From: Aplysia californica
Lineage: Eukaryota
NCBI RefSeq assembly: GCF_000002075.1
Contig: NW_004797524.1
Coordinates: forward strand, 464,741-528,740
Length of the DNA stretch: 64,000 nt
Reading direction: 5' to 3'
Position 1 is the stretch's first letter; each line of letters opens with the position of its first letter. The position numbers and the translations under genes are program-made. Under the pieces are notes generated by a model, which was not told where the DNA came from, did no database searches, and was given only the letters and a program-made list of their open reading frames with translations. This document shows, piece by piece, positions 40,401 through 51,455 of the stretch.

Positions 40401-43400
40401 CGCGTACATCGCAAGGCTCACCTGCGGGCGCGCAGTGTAAGGGAGAATGACGAATGTCGAATGACTTTGCTACTTTTTAATCTAAACCATTCAAACTTTA
40501 GAAACTGCATTATGAGCACCTCAATCAGATATCTGGTGAATTACAGCTTAAAAGAGTGAAAAATAGAAGAGTTATAAAGTGAAAACAGTTTTTGCCTCTC
40601 CTGAAAAATTTGCCTCGCTACCTGCGCAGGACCATTCGTCGTTTTCCCTTACAACGGCAGCCCTTAAAACCCAATAGGCAGAGCATTTGTACAAGGCAAT
40701 TTTGTCTTTCGTTTGGGTGTAGGCTAACGATACGGTCCATGCTACGAAATGACTTTTTTTTTTAGAGAGAGTGACGAGTGGCTGCCACGATAGTGCACTG
40801 TCTAAGAGTACACATGTCTGTATTTTTTGGGGAGTTTTCAAGACTCTTCTTTACCCGCTTAGCTTTTTTCTTTTTGAGGATAGACATAAAATTTAGAGGT
40901 CCCACCTCACCTCTTAAATAACTTAATGTTGATAGGGGCATTATTATAAGTACCATACTATACCAAAGTTGTCTTGGTAGTCATATTGTTTTGTGTGTGT
41001 TAGCTGTGCAGTGCATTGTTGCAAATTATTTTGATCAAGCCTTGAAGTCTCATAGTTTCAGTTGATAAATATGGACACTTGGTTGCAATTTAAAATGTCT
41101 GCAGGCAACATATAATAGACCTAATAGTTTGCAATATATTGCTTTGAAATATGTGATGAAACACTTTTCTCGTCGAGTATTGCTGTCTTTCTATAAATCC
41201 CTTTAAGTGGGTGGTTGGCCGGTGCTCTGGTGTGGTTTGCTTCTTCTTTCCTATCAAACATCTGTCGTCCTTATCTCCCCTCCTTCTTTTTTATGTTTGT
41301 TACTCTTTTGTAACGCCTCTGATCTTCTGGCGCTCATATGATCTTATGCAGTTGCGAGCGCCGTAAAACCTCTAGATCTGCTACTAAATCCCCCTAATCC
41401 CACCCGCCTCTTAGATAATTTAGATTGTATTGATCTAGGTGTAAAGCATTTATTTTTAAAAAATATTTTTATTCTTTGGTTGTGAGGTGAGCTTCAGAAA
41501 CTCACCTATGTAATATTAAAATTCATGACTTTTGTAAGGTATTACATGTAATAATTTTGCTTTCACAGGTGGTGCGGCCCTTGCAAAATCCTTGGTCCAA
41601 GGCTGGAATCACTCATGTCTAAAGAACAAGGGAAAGTGACTATGGCAAAAGTCGATATCGATGATCATTCAGATCTGGCCATGGAATATGGGGTAAGCAA
41701 TTTCCTTTTCTCCTTTGTGTTCTAGTTCTGTCTTTTTGATGGACAGTCTTTCTTTATGATTTTTTTCTTCCTCATATCCCGCGGCCAAGGTCCTTGCCTT
41801 CAAAATGCCTTTCTCTTGTAGGGAGTTAATCCGATTCAGTAGCTAGCAAGCAATCAAGGTACATTGAGTGAGGTTTATTGAAGATTTTGATACATGCACT
41901 TCAATTCCTGTGTTTAATGCAGTTAAAACTGGTCTAAAGACACAATACTGCCGTATTTAAATCTTATTTTACCTGCTCGTTTGATTCTTCTTCCAAAAAC
42001 AGAGGTGTGATCAGCAGCAACAGTGATTGTCAATTTGTATACCTCTGTCAGAACATGCGTGTTGATATATACAGTCAAACCCCGTTGTACCAAATCCATC
42101 TCAAAATAGATGGTACCAACTTGAACAAGGAGAATAACCCAGTGTATCTTGGAGTACAACTTGACAGCAAGCTCAACCTGAAACAACACACCAACAACCT
42201 TAGGAAGAAAGCTATGAAGAGACTTAATCTCACCAAACGACTAGCCAGTACCAACTGGGGATCAGACAAGAACACCTTAAGAGGCCTCTATTTGGGATAT
42301 ACCAGAGCTGTTTTTGATTATAATCTTGTTTTACAAAAAATCTGCAGTAAAACTACAAAGAACTCAATGGACACCATCCAAAACCAAGCTCTTCGTCTTA
42401 TCTCTGGCGGAATGAGATCCTCATCGACTGTGGCTTGTAAAATCCACACAAATATTGAGCCATTAGAAACTCAAAAAAAACGGGCAGCTTTAAAAGTATA
42501 TGAAAGATCTAAAAGGCTAGAAAATAACCACCCTAATAGAATCCTTGTTGACAAGTGGAAACCTAATCAAAGACTAAAAAATACAAAATCTGTATTTGAC
42601 ACTGTTCTCAATCTCCAAGAAAAACATCACCTCCCTGAAAGACGAGAACCTTTGGAAAGAGTTCCTTCAACTCCCCCACCACATCTCACCATAGCAAAGC
42701 CAGAAATTAGGAAAACACTTTTGGACAAGAGCAATAAAAACACATATCCAGTAGCACTAAAACATTCTGCCCTTGAAACAATTGATTCCTATCCACCAAC
42801 ATGGATCCACTCATACACTGATGGATCTGCCTTTAAGGCAACAATCAATGCTGGATATGGGTCAGTGAGCAACTTGCCCAGTGTTTTAAAAAAGAAAGTC
42901 TTTAATTCCAGCGGGTCCTTCTGCTCCAATTTCATTGCCGAACAACAGGCTATCACCAACACAGCAAACTACATCAACTACTTGTTTGACACTAACCCAC
43001 TTGCTACCACAGACATCGTTATCTTTACAGACAGCCTTTCGACACTAGAGACACTTGAGAGTGGGACTGATGTGAACAAAGATATATTGCACTTGATTTG
43101 GAGTCTACATAATTTGATAAGTAGGCACCACGTCAGAGTAGTCCTACAATGGATTCCTGCCCACACTGGAATACCGGGAAATGAAAGAGCTGATGCTCTG
43201 GCAAAGAAAGGAGCTAGCCTCCCTCAGCCTGAAATTCCTACGAATTACACCACCTGCTGCCAAATGATCAAGTCAAACCTCAAGGAAGAGTGGATGAATG
43301 ATTGGGCCACAGGTACGACAGGAAGGATGATGTATGGCCACATGAATAAACCACTGATCAAAGATCCAATCAATGAGTTGAGGAGGAGAGATCAATCCAT

Positions 43401-46400
43401 AATCTTCCAACTTAGAACCCAACATGTACCTCTCAACCAACATCTCAACTGAATTGGAGTAAAGCAGTTTGCTGCCTGCCCATTATGTGACTACCCCTCA
43501 GAGACAGTGGAACATTATCTGTTCTTCTGTAGAAAACTAACTGATTTAAAGGGATGTTTTCTTCCCAAGCTACCCCACACATCTAATTGCCTCTACTCCT
43601 CAAGACAACAATTAGAACAGACATGCAGCTATTACCGAATGGCATCATGCAGAAGAGTTAATGCTCAGATGCTACTGGATCGCAAACAACAACAACCCCG
43701 TTGTACTGCCAGCCCCGCTTACTGCCCGGTTTTGCCAATGTACAAAAAGAATCCCCTCTATAAACATGGTATTTGCGCCTTTACACTGCTCTCCGCCAAA
43801 TGTCTCAATGGTACAGTCCTTATTAAACTACTGTAAATTTACCCTGTTGTATCGCCAGCAAACTAGCCGCCAGTAATACACAGTACACACTGGGGAACAC
43901 ATGGCAGAGCTGGAGCGCGAGAACGGAACTGAATCGCCACTCTTCCCTGCGGAACGCGATTCACGATTCACTTCAGCGGAATGCGGAATAATATCGCCTT
44001 CCGATTCCCGATTCACTCCCCTGTCACTGTCACCACCTTGTGGCTTGTTTGTAACCTACTGCTGGGTTGTGAGTTGAGTCTTGAGCACAAGAACGGAATG
44101 GAAGACTTATTATGGCTCTCCTTTATTTTACAAAAGATGGTATAGTCCAACCCCCCTATTAAAACATAATGAACGGATTCCAACCAATAGACTAGGAATT
44201 TTATAGAGCCATTGTTTTAGCAAATCATGGGGGGGGGGGGGGTGAATTTATGGGGTCGCTAATTGAAGTCAATAGAGCAGCACAACGAAGAGTGGGGAGG
44301 GGGGGGCGGAGAGGATGGTGGGGCAACAAGGGTGGGACTCGCGAAGAGGCGTTGATATGACACTGTTCTGTTTCATGCATACAACGAGTCCGAGGCTTAG
44401 TGTTCCACGAGCGCTCGCTAACTCGCGGTTCTTTGAATCCGACTGAATCGCGAGTCACCACTCTCAGATTTGGTGAGCAGGATCCAGCTCTAACACACAG
44501 CGCACGTCACATCCCCTGAATGATTGCTTGACACATTTCACACTCACGTTTCTACAAGCTAGGCCTATGTGTAGATCAAACTCTTTTCACCAATTTGCTC
44601 CCTCCCCGCCCATCCCACCTCTCCACCCTTGTCTTGTAAATTTCAGGTAATATGGATAGCTCTTCAGTGATGTAAGCTTAGTTTGTCTTAAGCGAACACA
44701 ATAGGCCTTCCATGTGTAATGTAAAAAAGTAGTTTACAATTATATAAAACATCACTTTATAATTCAGCATCAAATTCACTTCCCGCGTGGTGCGCTGATT
44801 ATGAAAATGCTATTATATTAAAGCTTTGGTCAATATTTAAAAAAATTGGAATTAAAGATATTTTATTTAGTAAGGACTCGCACCCAAGTGTAAGTGGCTG
44901 ATCGAAGGGAGATAATTCATTACTTCATCTAGTGATTGGTAGAAAAATTCCTTTGACGTAGGACAGTAGGTGCTTCATGTATTTAACAGAGGACATGAAA
45001 ACCTCATTGTACCACCTGCCTCGCTGTACCGCCAACTTCATGCTCGTCCCAAGGTATGCCGTGTAATGAGGTTTGGCTGATGATAATAACTTAATAACAG
45101 TATACCGGTACATTTATGAAAGAGTTGCTGTACATTAAATAGGCTAGTATTTGTGATACTTGTCATTGTGGAAGTTGTTGATATTATATTTTATTGTGAT
45201 GTGCCTAGAGCCATCAGGGAGTGGGCATTATAAAAGTGATCTTACGTGTATGATATGGAGCATCTGGGAAACTCTACAAACCAAACTTGATTCAGGTTGA
45301 CTCTTACTGAAGTTTACAAATGTTCAGGTGTTAAATTTCCATGGAACTGCAGGAGTCAGTCTTTGCGAAGATTTTGACATGTTAGGAGTTCATATAAAAA
45401 TCATTGCCATGTCAAAATCATTTGCCATCTTCACCACATTCTGCTCTGGGATTTTTTAGCAATTCTGTGATTTCTGTTTGCCTCTAGCCGAGCATAGTAA
45501 AGTCAGTTCCTGGGTGGTTAGCAGGTGCTCTGGTGTAGTTTGCTCCTTGTCTTTCGTCCATGTCTCTCCTCCATCTATTTTGTGTTTGTGACACCTCTGA
45601 TCTTCAGCACTTATGTGACCTAACTGTTTGGCAAGTGCCGCAAAAATCTCACTAACAAACCAAAAGTCAATGCCTTGCATGCTGCCGTCTGTTTTGTACA
45701 TTTTTAAATACAATATCAATACACTGCGTAATATTAGATCGATCATTGCTTCCAACCAGTGCGTGAAAAACATATTTAGTACGTTTTGAAGGTCTTATAA
45801 GTATGGAAATTGATCGCTTTTAAGGACAAGCGGGCTAGCCCACATTTTGGGGGTTTCCAGAAATCTTGACCTACACCAAAAGTGAACATTGCCCTACCTA
45901 TAGGAGAAGTTTGGTTTCATTGGTGTGTCTATTTGTTTGGTTACAGAGAAAACTCTCCTTTTTTTTTAAAGGAACTAAACAAGGGTCCAAAAACTTTACC
46001 TTTGATTTTCTCAATTTCAGGATAGCCACCTTGCACATAAAAGCGACCAATTAATTGTCATGTTTTGGAAAAACTTGCGCATATTTTCTTTTTTCTGGTA
46101 TTACTTGTCTCAGACTTGCCAGTGCTGAAGAAATCTTATGAACTTTCAAGACCTGATAAAATTATGAATGAGAATGAAGCCCATAAGTCATTTCAGTCTG
46201 TATCCTTACTACAGTTACTGAGTTAGTGTTAGTTCTTGAGCAAGAATTTATTGAAAGCAGAAAAGTGTGTGTAAAGGATTTGGATGTGCCTCCTTGGATA
46301 TTGTTCATCATCTTGACCTGCCACATGGGTACAGTATGTTTTTGGGATTTGAAAAGTTGGTAGCTGTGTATTACATCGTGTGGATGTTTCTATTATTCTG

Positions 46401-49202: not shown

Positions 49203-51455
49203 ATGATGTATCTGATGGAAGTTTTCCTCATACTAAGCACGGCTCTGATTATGACATCAGCTGTTGGGCCCTTGTGTTTTGAATGTGTGGGCGTGGAGAA
49301 TCCTTACGAGTGTAAAAATATAGTTCGATGCAAAGAGAACCAAATGTGTTTTTCCACGAGGTACATTGACTATCACAACGGGAAGGAGTTCTGGGACCTG
49401 AGCTGTAAAACGGCGTCTTTCTGTATCGCTGTAGGGATTCACACAGGGCGCCGTCGTCGAGACTCTGACTCTGACAATTGGGCTGCACAAAGGATTATAA
49501 GTACCCAGCATGCTCAAGATGAGGCGTTTCAACGACACTCTAGAGAGATTAATGACCACCTTGCTCTCTGCTCCTCATGCTGTCCCGGTGATCACTGCAA
49601 TACCAACGTGTGTCTTACAGGCGTGATCAAACCACCGAAAGGTCTTTCTTGCTACTCTTGTCAGGACGTCAAGGACCCGGCTGACTGCAGACTTGTTGAA
49701 AATTGCAAGTTAGGGGAGAGCTGTGCTGTATGGACAACGCCAAACGGCCTGCTAAGTCTGGGGTGTAAATCCAGCAGTGTGTGTACTGTGGAAGGTAATC
49801 AGATTTTCTACGGGAAACGAGCTCTTGGCGTAAACGCATTTTCTTCACAGCCTTCTCAAACACCGGCAGCTGTTACGGGTAATAGAGGCGTGCGTGCATC
49901 TCGCTATGAAATGCCGAGAACATACGTAACACCGTTTCCCAGCATGAACTTACTGCAAAAGTTCGGTGCCGGTAACTTCCAGCTTAGCGCAGTCGAGCAA
50001 GGCTCTGATGTTTATGACGTCTCCGGATTCCATAGACGATCGGTGAGCTCAGGATGTCGTGCTTGCTGTGACAGCAACTTCTGCGCCCAGCGTTACTGCT
50101 CGCGCGTCACGTCGTTACCCCAGGGCGTGGTCACCGTCACAGCGCCGCCTACTACGACGCCAACGACAACAACAACCACTACCACCACGACAACAACAGC
50201 TGCCCCCACCACCACCACAACAACAGCCGCCCCCACCACTACCACAACAACAACCACTACCACCACAACACCGAAACCATTGTCCGTGAACATCGACCCT
50301 GTCTCTCAGAACGTCACTGAGGGCGACAATACGGCTGTCACTTGCCTCGTTCGTGGACAGCCGCCAATACACGTCACCATCGAGAAGAAAAATTCCGGAA
50401 CATCTCCGACTGTCTTCTGTGATGAGCAAATATTGGTAGATCGGAAAAATATTTCATGCAGATTATCTCAGGTGCCGTTATCACTTTCAGGAAGTATGCA
50501 GTGCAAGGCAACTAATGCGTTTGAGAGTACTTTTTCAACAGCTCAGCTGTTTGTCAAAGAACGTATAATTCCTTTCTCAGTGACACAGAAACCGACGGAT
50601 ACGGACTTGACTCCTGGTATTACCACAGAAATCTTCTGCGGTGTCCGCGGCAAACCGACTGCCCATTACACATGGCTGAGGAACGTGTCCGGAGTTCTTA
50701 ACAAAGTGGTCAACGGCAGTGCAGTGTCCAGTTACTACGACACACGTACTGATGCAGCAGTACTGGCAGTCACTGGAAAAAGCTCGGCCGCTGATGGCGT
50801 CTATACGTGCAGAGCTAAGAACACGCACGAGACTATGGATTTCATGTTCACGCTAAAAACACTGACTGATGTGGCAGTAGTTTCTCATACCCCTAGTAGC
50901 ATTACAATAGGGGCACCGCCTTCTCAAACTGAAGTAACCGTATCTTGCGTTTTTCATAGCTATCCTTCCCCGTCAGTGGAGTGGACCTATAAAACAGAGC
51001 GCGGTTTAGTTGCTAAATTGCCTAAACAAAACTTCAGCGCTTCGTCAACTGGAGACAAGACAGAAAGTCAGCTGACCATCAAAGTGGACTTTATCAAAAA
51101 GAACGCTCTGTCGGGAGTCACGTGTTTTGGGGACAACGGGTACGGGAAGGTGAATGCGTCAACTTCCATAACAATTCAAATGCCCGCCAAGATCACCACA
51201 CCTGCTCAGAACTATACAGTCCAACATGGACACAGCCTAGCAATCAACTGCGATGTGACAGGAAACCCTCAGCCAGTGATCAATTGGCAATTTCTTGACG
51301 AGTACGGATTGCCGTCAGTATTGCCAAACATTCGTTTGGAAAACCAAGCAAGGAGACTAATTGCTGATAAAGTAAGTTTCCCAGGGACGATTATCTGCAT
51401 GGCATCTAATTCACTTGGAACAGATGAAGCCAGCTTCGGAATTAAAGTTATATGA
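49203..51455 (+). CDS. Secreted 750-aa protein: signal peptide, two split 12-Cys Ly6/uPAR-like domains, Thr-rich mucin stalk, four Ig-like domains; single coding exon
   Basis: Uninterrupted ORF from ATG 49203 with a hydrophobic leader. Two C-x2-C-x8-C-x5-C-x5-C...C-x2-CC-x4-C-x4-C units, poly-Thr at ~50142-50270, and Ig I-set-type motifs (C-V-G-P...W...G-Y-C-A-N) at ~50278-51452. No TM segment is visible. Confidence 0.9.
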   Translation: MMYLMEVFLILSTALIMTSAVGPLCFECVGVENPYECKNIVRCKENQMCFSTRYIDYHNGKEFWDLSCKTASFCIAVGIHTGRRRRDSDSDNWAAQRIISTQHAQDEAFQRHSREINDHLALCSSCCPGDHCNTNVCLTGVIKPPKGLSCYSCQDVKDPADCRLVENCKLGESCAVWTTPNGLLSLGCKSSSVCTVEGNQIFYGKRALGVNAFSSQPSQTPAAVTGNRGVRASRYEMPRTYVTPFPSMNLLQKFGAGNFQLSAVEQGSDVYDVSGFHRRSVSSGCRACCDSNFCAQRYCSRVTSLPQGVVTVTAPPTTTPTTTTTTTTTTTTAAPTTTTTTAAPTTTTTTTTTTTTPKPLSVNIDPVSQNVTEGDNTAVTCLVRGQPPIHVTIEKKNSGTSPTVFCDEQILVDRKNISCRLSQVPLSLSGSMQCKATNAFESTFSTAQLFVKERIIPFSVTQKPTDTDLTPGITTEIFCGVRGKPTAHYTWLRNVSGVLNKVVNGSAVSSYYDTRTDAAVLAVTGKSSAADGVYTCRAKNTHETMDFMFTLKTLTDVAVVSHTPSSITIGAPPSQTEVTVSCVFHSYPSPSVEWTYKTERGLVAKLPKQNFSASSTGDKTESQLTIKVDFIKKNALSGVTCFGDNGYGKVNASTSITIQMPAKITTPAQNYTVQHGHSLAINCDVTGNPQPVINWQFLDEYGLPSVLPNIRLENQARRLIADKVSFPGTIICMASNSLGTDEASFGIKVI

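Follow-up and report, generated by a model that had tools for sequence, protein, structure and literature searches.

The window analysed here, a stretch of 64,000 nucleotides from Aplysia californica (assembly GCF_000002075.1, contig NW_004797524.1, positions 464,741 to 528,740 of the forward strand), carries an intronless gene for a protein in which two Ly6/uPAR-like (LU, three-finger) domains are followed by a mucin-like stalk and four immunoglobulin (Ig) domains. The product, which is probably secreted, belongs to an uncharacterised tandem-LU family. Both LU domains contain a long cysteine-free insert in finger 3, and these inserts carry basic sites, some of them preceded by glycine, of the kind used in prohormone processing. 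This feature is more than chance: the reading frame is open through both inserts and the motifs are enriched at the same loop in 105 homologues. Together, these observations suggest that the LU domains are probably cut in finger 3 into disulfide-linked two-chain forms, the spacer between the cuts being discarded.

Cysteine framework and predicted fold of the LU domains

An earlier note on this DNA had described two domains with the common spacing C-x2-C-x8-C-x5-C-x5-C-x18/13-C-x5-C-[insert]-C-x2-CC-x4-C-x4-C, interrupted between Cys7 and Cys8 by cysteine-free inserts of 48 and 90 residues. The translation reproduces this spacing exactly, and the interval assigned to the two domains (49275-50099) runs precisely from the first cysteine of LU1 to the last cysteine of LU2. 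The cysteines of LU1 lie at residues 25, 28, 37, 43, 49, 68 and 74 ahead of the insert and at 123, 126, 127, 132 and 137 after it; those of LU2 lie at 150, 153, 162, 168, 174, 188 and 194, then at 285, 288, 289, 294 and 299. Both inserts are present where they had been placed, which is finger 3, and every basic motif quoted for them (G-RRRR, RHSR, G-KR, RGVR/RASR and RR) was found in the translation. Beyond the canonical ten cysteines, each domain has an extra pair, one residue located at C-x2 before CC and the other at x4-C after CN (residues 123/137 in LU1 and 285/299 in LU2). This pair is also observed in most homologues (166/193 parsed domains) and presumably forms a sixth disulfide within the C-terminal chain.

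Residues 1-302 were modelled with AlphaFold2 (AF2) from an alignment of 58 homologous sequences, in which the framework cysteines are all invariant and the Asn after the last of them is nearly so. The predicted local distance difference test score reaches 94-97 in the LU cores and falls to 53-65 in insert 1 and 44-57 in insert 2. In a Foldseek search against the PDB the top matches were all LU proteins (uPAR, C4.4A, CD177, TEX101, Lypd6 and CD59), with weak E-values (best 3.8e-3). After re-alignment with VIA, for which low-confidence stretches were trimmed, solved LU domains aligned almost completely across each insert: LU1 matched the LU domain of GPIHBP1 (Z 9.2, 77/81 residues aligned over model residues 22-140) and LU2 (model residues 147-301) matched uPAR D1 (Z 7.6, model residues 148-298) and CD59 (Z 7.5). 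All structural matches from both programs are LU, TGF-beta-receptor-ectodomain or snake three-finger-toxin folds, and they span the inserts. The family profile also matches PSCA by sequence (E 1.3e-5). Membership of the LU superfamily is thus supported by the cysteine framework, the fold and profile homology, in agreement with the earlier assignment. With the Pfam LU models (PF00021, PF00087 and PF16975) the window protein remained under the cut-offs (Toxin_TOLIP, 17.8 vs 21.2 bits, E 0.0057; UPAR_LY6, 12.6 vs 24.8 bits) since the match is broken up by the inserts, so that just half-domains align; in the N-terminal 300 residues, Toxin_TOLIP, UPAR_LY6 and UPAR_LY6_2 gave half-domain matches below threshold.

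A whole-genome search detected two Aplysia paralogues on another contig, with the same signal-peptide junction and two LU domains, in which only 14 and 13 residues occupy the insert position. AF2 predicts an unchanged topology for a short-loop paralogue, with a short loop in place of the insert. The modelled inserts are therefore expansions of finger 3. It had been supposed that an LU loop is normally short at this place, which holds for the paralogues and usually for the homologues, and that the fold should form without the inserts, which is borne out by the natural short-loop paralogue and by the trimmed structural alignments. In canonical LU domains the disulfides join cysteines 1-5, 2-3, 4-6, 7-8 and 9-10, and the 7-8 bond closes loop 3. 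By analogy with CD59 and GPIHBP1, to which the window domains align, and with this established connectivity, Cys7-Cys8 would close loop 3 at its base in both window LU domains.

Basic sites in finger 3 across the family

Residues 1-302 were used as the query of a HMMER scan against 1.84 billion representatives. This gave 114 homologues, the best with an E-value of 7e-29 and 40% identity. Twenty of them were looked up; all 13 that carried a name are from gastropods or bivalves (Elysia, Plakobranchus, Haliotis, Mercenaria, Pecten, Mya, Mytilus and Mactra), and the entries are labelled as uncharacterised or named after their Ig part, none of them being characterised. An Atlas look-up of one homologue likewise led to mollusc LU clusters. 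The nearest relatives of the window protein are from sea slugs, and two homologues, P0001 (Elysia) and P0002, are colinear with it to the last residue. The window protein itself has no exact record in protein collections, and two word-indexed protein searches for closer orthologues returned no matches.

A Cys-pattern expression was used to parse 192 LU domains from 105 homologues. Their loop 3 has a median length of 20 residues and a maximum of 99, and loops of 2-5 residues also occur; the Aplysia inserts fall in the upper tail of this distribution and are not unique. Dibasic pairs were found in 124/192 loops 3 vs 66.7 +/- 5.3 in shuffles, and G-[KR]-[KR] in 84/192 vs 7.2 +/- 2.5 expected (maximum 17 in 2000 shuffles), this enrichment being measured against shuffles of each loop and not against other LU families. 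A PF00021 scan intended as a control with other LU families was uninformative, as it gave no matches in the genome nor in the control genomes. Elsewhere in the domains dibasic pairs are scarce (5/192 for loop 1 and 26/192 for loop 2); per residue, their density falls from 0.0506 in loop 3 to 0.0064 in the remainder of the LU domain and amounts to 0.0070 outside the domain. The motif reads F/V/I/L at -1, G at 0, K/R at +1, R at +2 (77/83) and S/D/E at +3. A second basic site often stands 4-9 residues before Cys8, and the median distance from the last basic cluster to Cys8 is 7 residues. In the 50 loops with at least two basic clusters, the median stubs measure 7 and 6 residues and the median piece that would be excised is 9 residues long. 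The effect is large despite the relatedness of the sequences and recurs in both gastropods and bivalves.

Conservation within the loop was evaluated on domain pairs of 45-85% core identity. The sites are its best-conserved part (identity 0.36, basic residue retained 0.45), followed by the stubs (0.23-0.24); the spacer is the least conserved (0.16), with 45% of its positions gapped. In three colinear orthologues the insert lengths are 48/43/73 and 90/28/87 residues and the inserts are unalignable; K205 and R206 of the LU2 site are invariant, and clusters of the form R-x-S/R-R occupy the stretch matching the RHSR of LU1. The RR of LU2 matches in position the distal KR that many homologues carry 4-7 residues ahead of Cys8. 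The expectation that G-KR/RR and the distal sites would be conserved and the insert would diverge was thus upheld at the sequence level: basic sites, often with the Gly, are kept as insert sequence and length vary, but the proximal LU1 site is absent from the Elysia orthologue, the Gly before the site is not always kept and the internal RGVR/RASR of insert 2 is not conserved.

One homologue, P0004 (sacoglossan-like; L013 1001-2161), has a 99-residue loop 3 in LU2 with five to six tandem acidic units of about 16 residues, each ending in KR. These units follow a P-F-G-KR site and lie on a continuous genomic ORF (open reading frame). Judged from its sequence, this loop resembles a multi-copy peptide precursor set within an LU finger. 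A downstream ORF on the P0004 contig carries Ig domains.

Proposed maturation and alternative readings

When hydrophobic-Gly-Lys/Arg-Arg lies in an exposed, disordered stretch of a secretory protein, it acts as the standard signal for a convertase, a carboxypeptidase E/D-type enzyme and peptidylglycine alpha-amidating monooxygenase (PAM). The window protein combines several features of this type, namely a putative signal peptide, dibasic sites in segments predicted to be disordered and a Gly before the site. A subtilisin-like proprotein convertase would cut finger 3 after the Arg of hydrophobic-G-K/R-R, a carboxypeptidase would trim the basic residues and PAM would convert the exposed Gly into a C-terminal amide on the preceding residue. 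With a further cut at the second site, near Cys8, the spacer would be excised and discarded like a C-peptide, and each LU domain would persist as two chains held together by the Cys7-Cys8 disulfide and the beta-sheet. The mature window protein would then consist of three disulfide-linked chains (about residues 23-81, 115-203 and 280-750). The RRRR of LU1 would fit furin; the Y-G-K-R of LU2, which has no P4 Arg, would fit a PC1/PC2-type enzyme. We consider it fairly likely that cleavage occurs in vivo at one or more of these sites; amidation of the new chain ends is a serious possibility that falls just short of probable.

Several observations weigh against this maturation. The 192 parsed loops and the domain pairs include sequences related by descent, so that their counts are not independent events. 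About a third of the family loops (68/192), one Aplysia paralogue among them, have no dibasic site, and processing therefore cannot be obligatory for the fold. R-x-[KR]-R occurs in only 16/193 loops; without Arg at P4, most sites would depend on regulated-pathway enzymes of the PC1/PC2 type. RHSR, the distal site of LU1, amounts to no more than R-x-x-R. In addition, the parent is large and contains Ig domains, which sets it apart from classical prohormones, and the disulfide connectivity on which the two-chain form depends is assumed from the canonical LU pattern.

The main rival, which we judge unlikely though deserving of serious weight, is that the loops are never cut: hydrophobic-G-K/R-R at the tip of finger 3, which would be exposed and flexible, would be a binding epitope, for instance for an anionic ligand, a glycosaminoglycan or a receptor, and the Aplysia inserts would be tolerated disordered expansions. 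The fingers of three-finger proteins are their usual interaction surfaces, the Ig-containing parents look like adhesion or ligand-binding proteins, and the missing P4 Arg deprives most sites of a residue needed by constitutive furin; moreover, motif enrichment alone cannot separate a cleavage signal from a binding motif. What an uncut epitope leaves unexplained is why Gly is almost fixed at P3 and preceded by a hydrophobic residue, why P1 is strictly Arg, and why a second dibasic site frequently stands just before Cys8, with a hypervariable, indel-rich spacer between the two sites. Tandem units terminated by KR, as in P0004, are also typical of processed precursors.

Opening of finger 3 with loss of the spacer has also to be set against the converse proposal, that the protein is mainly a peptide precursor, with the LU scaffold as its carrier and the excised peptides (residues 87-110, 207-227 and 235-277) as the functional secreted signals. 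Aplysia is rich in processed peptide signals, the flanking sites are of prohormone form and P0004 offers multi-copy units flanked by KR. Against this, no segment of the loop is less conserved or richer in indels than the spacers, which differ in length and cannot be aligned in colinear orthologues, so that conservation of a released peptide between species was not found; the median excised piece in the family has only 9 residues, and the large conserved LU and Ig parts suggest that the protein itself is the product. We therefore regard this proposal as highly improbable. The spacers, being fast-evolving and indel-rich, are more like C-peptide linkers than like conserved signals, and a signalling role for them appears rather improbable. 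Of the processing model in the earlier note, the C-peptide-like spacer accordingly fits the conservation values well and the release of a conserved bioactive peptide fits them less well. More broadly, and with considerable doubt, a 'pro-LU' class might be envisaged in molluscs, with a convertase-opened finger 3, an amidated hydrophobic C-terminus and a two-chain module; some members, such as P0004, could be multi-copy peptide precursors supplying free signalling peptides that neuropeptide-prediction pipelines overlook.

Coding status and origin of the inserts

The combined 138 codons of the two inserts were open in frame in only 14/20000 shuffles, and the other two frames of the inserts contain 2-9 stops each. 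The inserts have a GC content of 0.50, vs 0.41-0.42 in their flanks. Each is single copy in the 927-Mb assembly of 4332 contigs; they are thus not derived from repeats, and a repeat or transposon origin was rejected. An origin as a retained ancestral intron was rejected as well, because in the multi-exon homologue of Haliotis asinina the introns fall before Cys7, with Cys7, loop 3 and the CC..CN cluster in one exon, so that the insert position is not an ancestral intron position. The site-bearing loops are kept in a homologue on a 1.9-kb contig that is mRNA-like (short flanks, AATAAA 12 nt from the end).

These data leave barely any credibility to the idea that the inserts are wholly or partly removed from the RNA as in-frame introns or exitrons, giving a main protein with short canonical loops: in-frame GT..AG pairs do exist in both inserts, and the best candidate (49795-50052, 258 nt, divisible by three, with a good donor AAG|GTAATC and the acceptor CTCAG|G) would yield an LU2 isoform with a 4-residue loop and no G-KR, in a family where loops of that size occur, but the frame openness and GC content of the inserts, the removal of the orthologue-aligned, invariant G-KR that this event would entail, the absence of a polypyrimidine tract at its acceptor, the position of the Haliotis introns and the loop retained in the mRNA-like homologue all argue against it.

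Gene and protein architecture

The gene is a single uninterrupted ORF of 750 codons plus stop (49203-51455, + strand), with no intron in the coding region by translation. All features are summarized in Table 1. In the AF2 model residues 2-17 of the leader form a helix, and the junction that follows it in the sequence, AVGP-x-CF, is common to both Aplysia paralogues. In the C-terminal half, Pfam I-set (105.5 bits, cut-off 23.7, E 1.5e-30) and Ig_3 (91.8 bits, E 4e-26) both score above cut-off. The C-terminus of the window protein has no hydrophobic tail and no glycosylphosphatidylinositol (GPI) signal; since the tail is absent, the protein is probably secreted.

Both paralogues consist of a signal peptide, two LU domains with a short loop 3, two Ig domains, a Thr/Pro-rich stalk, a further Ig domain and a C-terminal Cys-containing domain. 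The LU1 loop of one of them is strongly basic (KR, KKR), and that of the other has no dibasic site. The Haliotis homologue has three exons per LU domain spread over 10 kb, vs the intronless window gene and both intronless paralogues. This difference suggests that the Aplysia/sea-slug subfamily arose in the manner of a retrogene.

Two further ORFs were annotated in the window. One of 481 residues with an RNase H domain (E 1e-12; 42007-43452, + strand), about 6 kb upstream of the gene, is probably a retroelement remnant. The other, with a TEX33 family domain (E 9.5e-15), lies at 10537-11316 on the - strand.

Table 1. Features of the window gene and positions of its two Aplysia paralogues. Coordinates refer to the window unless a contig is named.
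Feature	Residues	Position	Strand	Basis or remark
Whole ORF		49203..51455	+	Signal peptide, LU1, LU2, Thr-rich stalk, four Ig domains; orthologues P0001 and P0002 are colinear with it down to the last residues
Probable signal peptide	1-22	49203..49268	+	By inspection: hydrophobic, AVG end directly before conserved GPLCF
LU domain 1	24-137	49272..49613	+	12 Cys, end CC-x2-D-x-CN; Cys framework, AF2, GPIHBP1 structural alignment
Insert 1, expanded loop 3 of LU1 (model)	75-122	49425..49568	+	48 residues, Cys-free; translation; low AF2 confidence; single copy
G-RRRR, insert 1	82-86	49446..49460	+	R-R-R-R furin-grade; Gly before it has the form of an amidation signal
RHSR, insert 1	111-114	49533..49544	+	Distal R-x-x-R, 8 residues ahead of Cys8
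LU domain 2	148-299	49644..50099	+	12 Cys; Toxin_TOLIP E 0.0057; PSCA E 1.3e-5; uPAR D1 and CD59 alignments
Insert 2, expanded loop 3 of LU2 (model)	195-284	49785..50054	+	90 residues, Cys-free; translation; predicted disordered; single copy
G-KR, insert 2	204-206	49812..49820	+	F-Y before it; matches the family consensus hydrophobic-G-K/R-R
RGVR-ASR, insert 2	228-234	49884..49904	+	Internal sites of R-x-x-R type; not conserved in orthologues
RR, insert 2	278-279	50034..50039	+	5 residues ahead of LU2 Cys8
Thr/Pro/Ala-rich mucin-like stalk	314-356	50142..50270	+	Translation
Four Ig domains (I-set / Ig_3 / Ig_2)		50277..51452	+	Pfam
Paralogue 1, 690 aa, intronless		G000:C420:98314-100386 (L008 515-2587)	+	Genome search
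Paralogue 2, about 650 aa, intronless		G000:C420:162848-164800 approx (L009)	-	Genome search

Comparison with known systems

Few small disulfide-rich folds have been studied as thoroughly as the LU/three-finger domains (CD59, uPAR, Lynx, snake toxins), whose fingers serve as binding surfaces. With the canonical members CD59, GPIHBP1, PSCA, uPAR, C4.4A and TEX101, the window domains share the cysteine framework through CC-x4-CN and the three-finger fold, and with uPAR, C4.4A and TEX101 the tandem arrangement as well. The window protein differs from them by its extra Cys pair, by a loop 3 of 48/90 residues vs the 13-20 typical of the paralogues and the family, by sites of convertase/amidation type, by having no GPI signal and by its fusion to a mucin stalk and four Ig domains.

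Neither cleavage nor furin is mentioned for LU loops in a 2019 review of LU proteins. In snake three-finger toxins, an N-terminal propeptide is removed at dibasic sites and C-terminal amidation occurs, though rarely (PMC12390062). This processing is terminal, whereas the candidate sites of the window protein are internal to finger 3 and would split the domain into two chains. A 2026 survey of invertebrate LU proteins reports mollusc and arthropod proteins that join LU domains with one to three Ig domains, an architecture like that of the window gene and its homologues; its text does not mention cleavage, furin or insertions, and the loop-3 motif is undescribed there (PMC13719153). A preprint on a two-finger conotoxin was considered as a parallel and set aside as unrelated, its fold being Argos-like. 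No description of internal convertase sites or processing in LU loop 3 was found in the full-text literature searched, a scope that leaves out most subscription journals and is no proof of novelty; this agrees with the earlier statement that no such system was known, to which the terminal processing of the snake toxins (PMC12390062) adds a qualification.

If the proposed opening of finger 3 is correct, it would represent a new maturation step and a regulatory switch for the three-finger fold: neither signal-directed internal opening of a finger nor a tethered amidated end is described in the reviews and surveys searched. It would also point to an origin of small peptides and amidated chain ends that escapes standard prohormone searches. 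The large unannotated mollusc family can be defined by a simple sequence signature, and Aplysia is favourable for testing by mass spectrometry.

The closest mechanistic parallel to this proposal is the B-C-A processing of insulin and relaxin, in which a spacer bounded by basic residues is excised from a disulfide-closed loop to leave two linked chains, and in which the spacer evolves fast. The likeness to the window family lies in its least-conserved spacer and is an analogy of mechanism, not a sign of membership. The folds are unrelated: the window LU domains are all-beta and display neither the insulin fold nor the Cys pattern of the A and B chains, and their parent is a multidomain protein of 750 residues.

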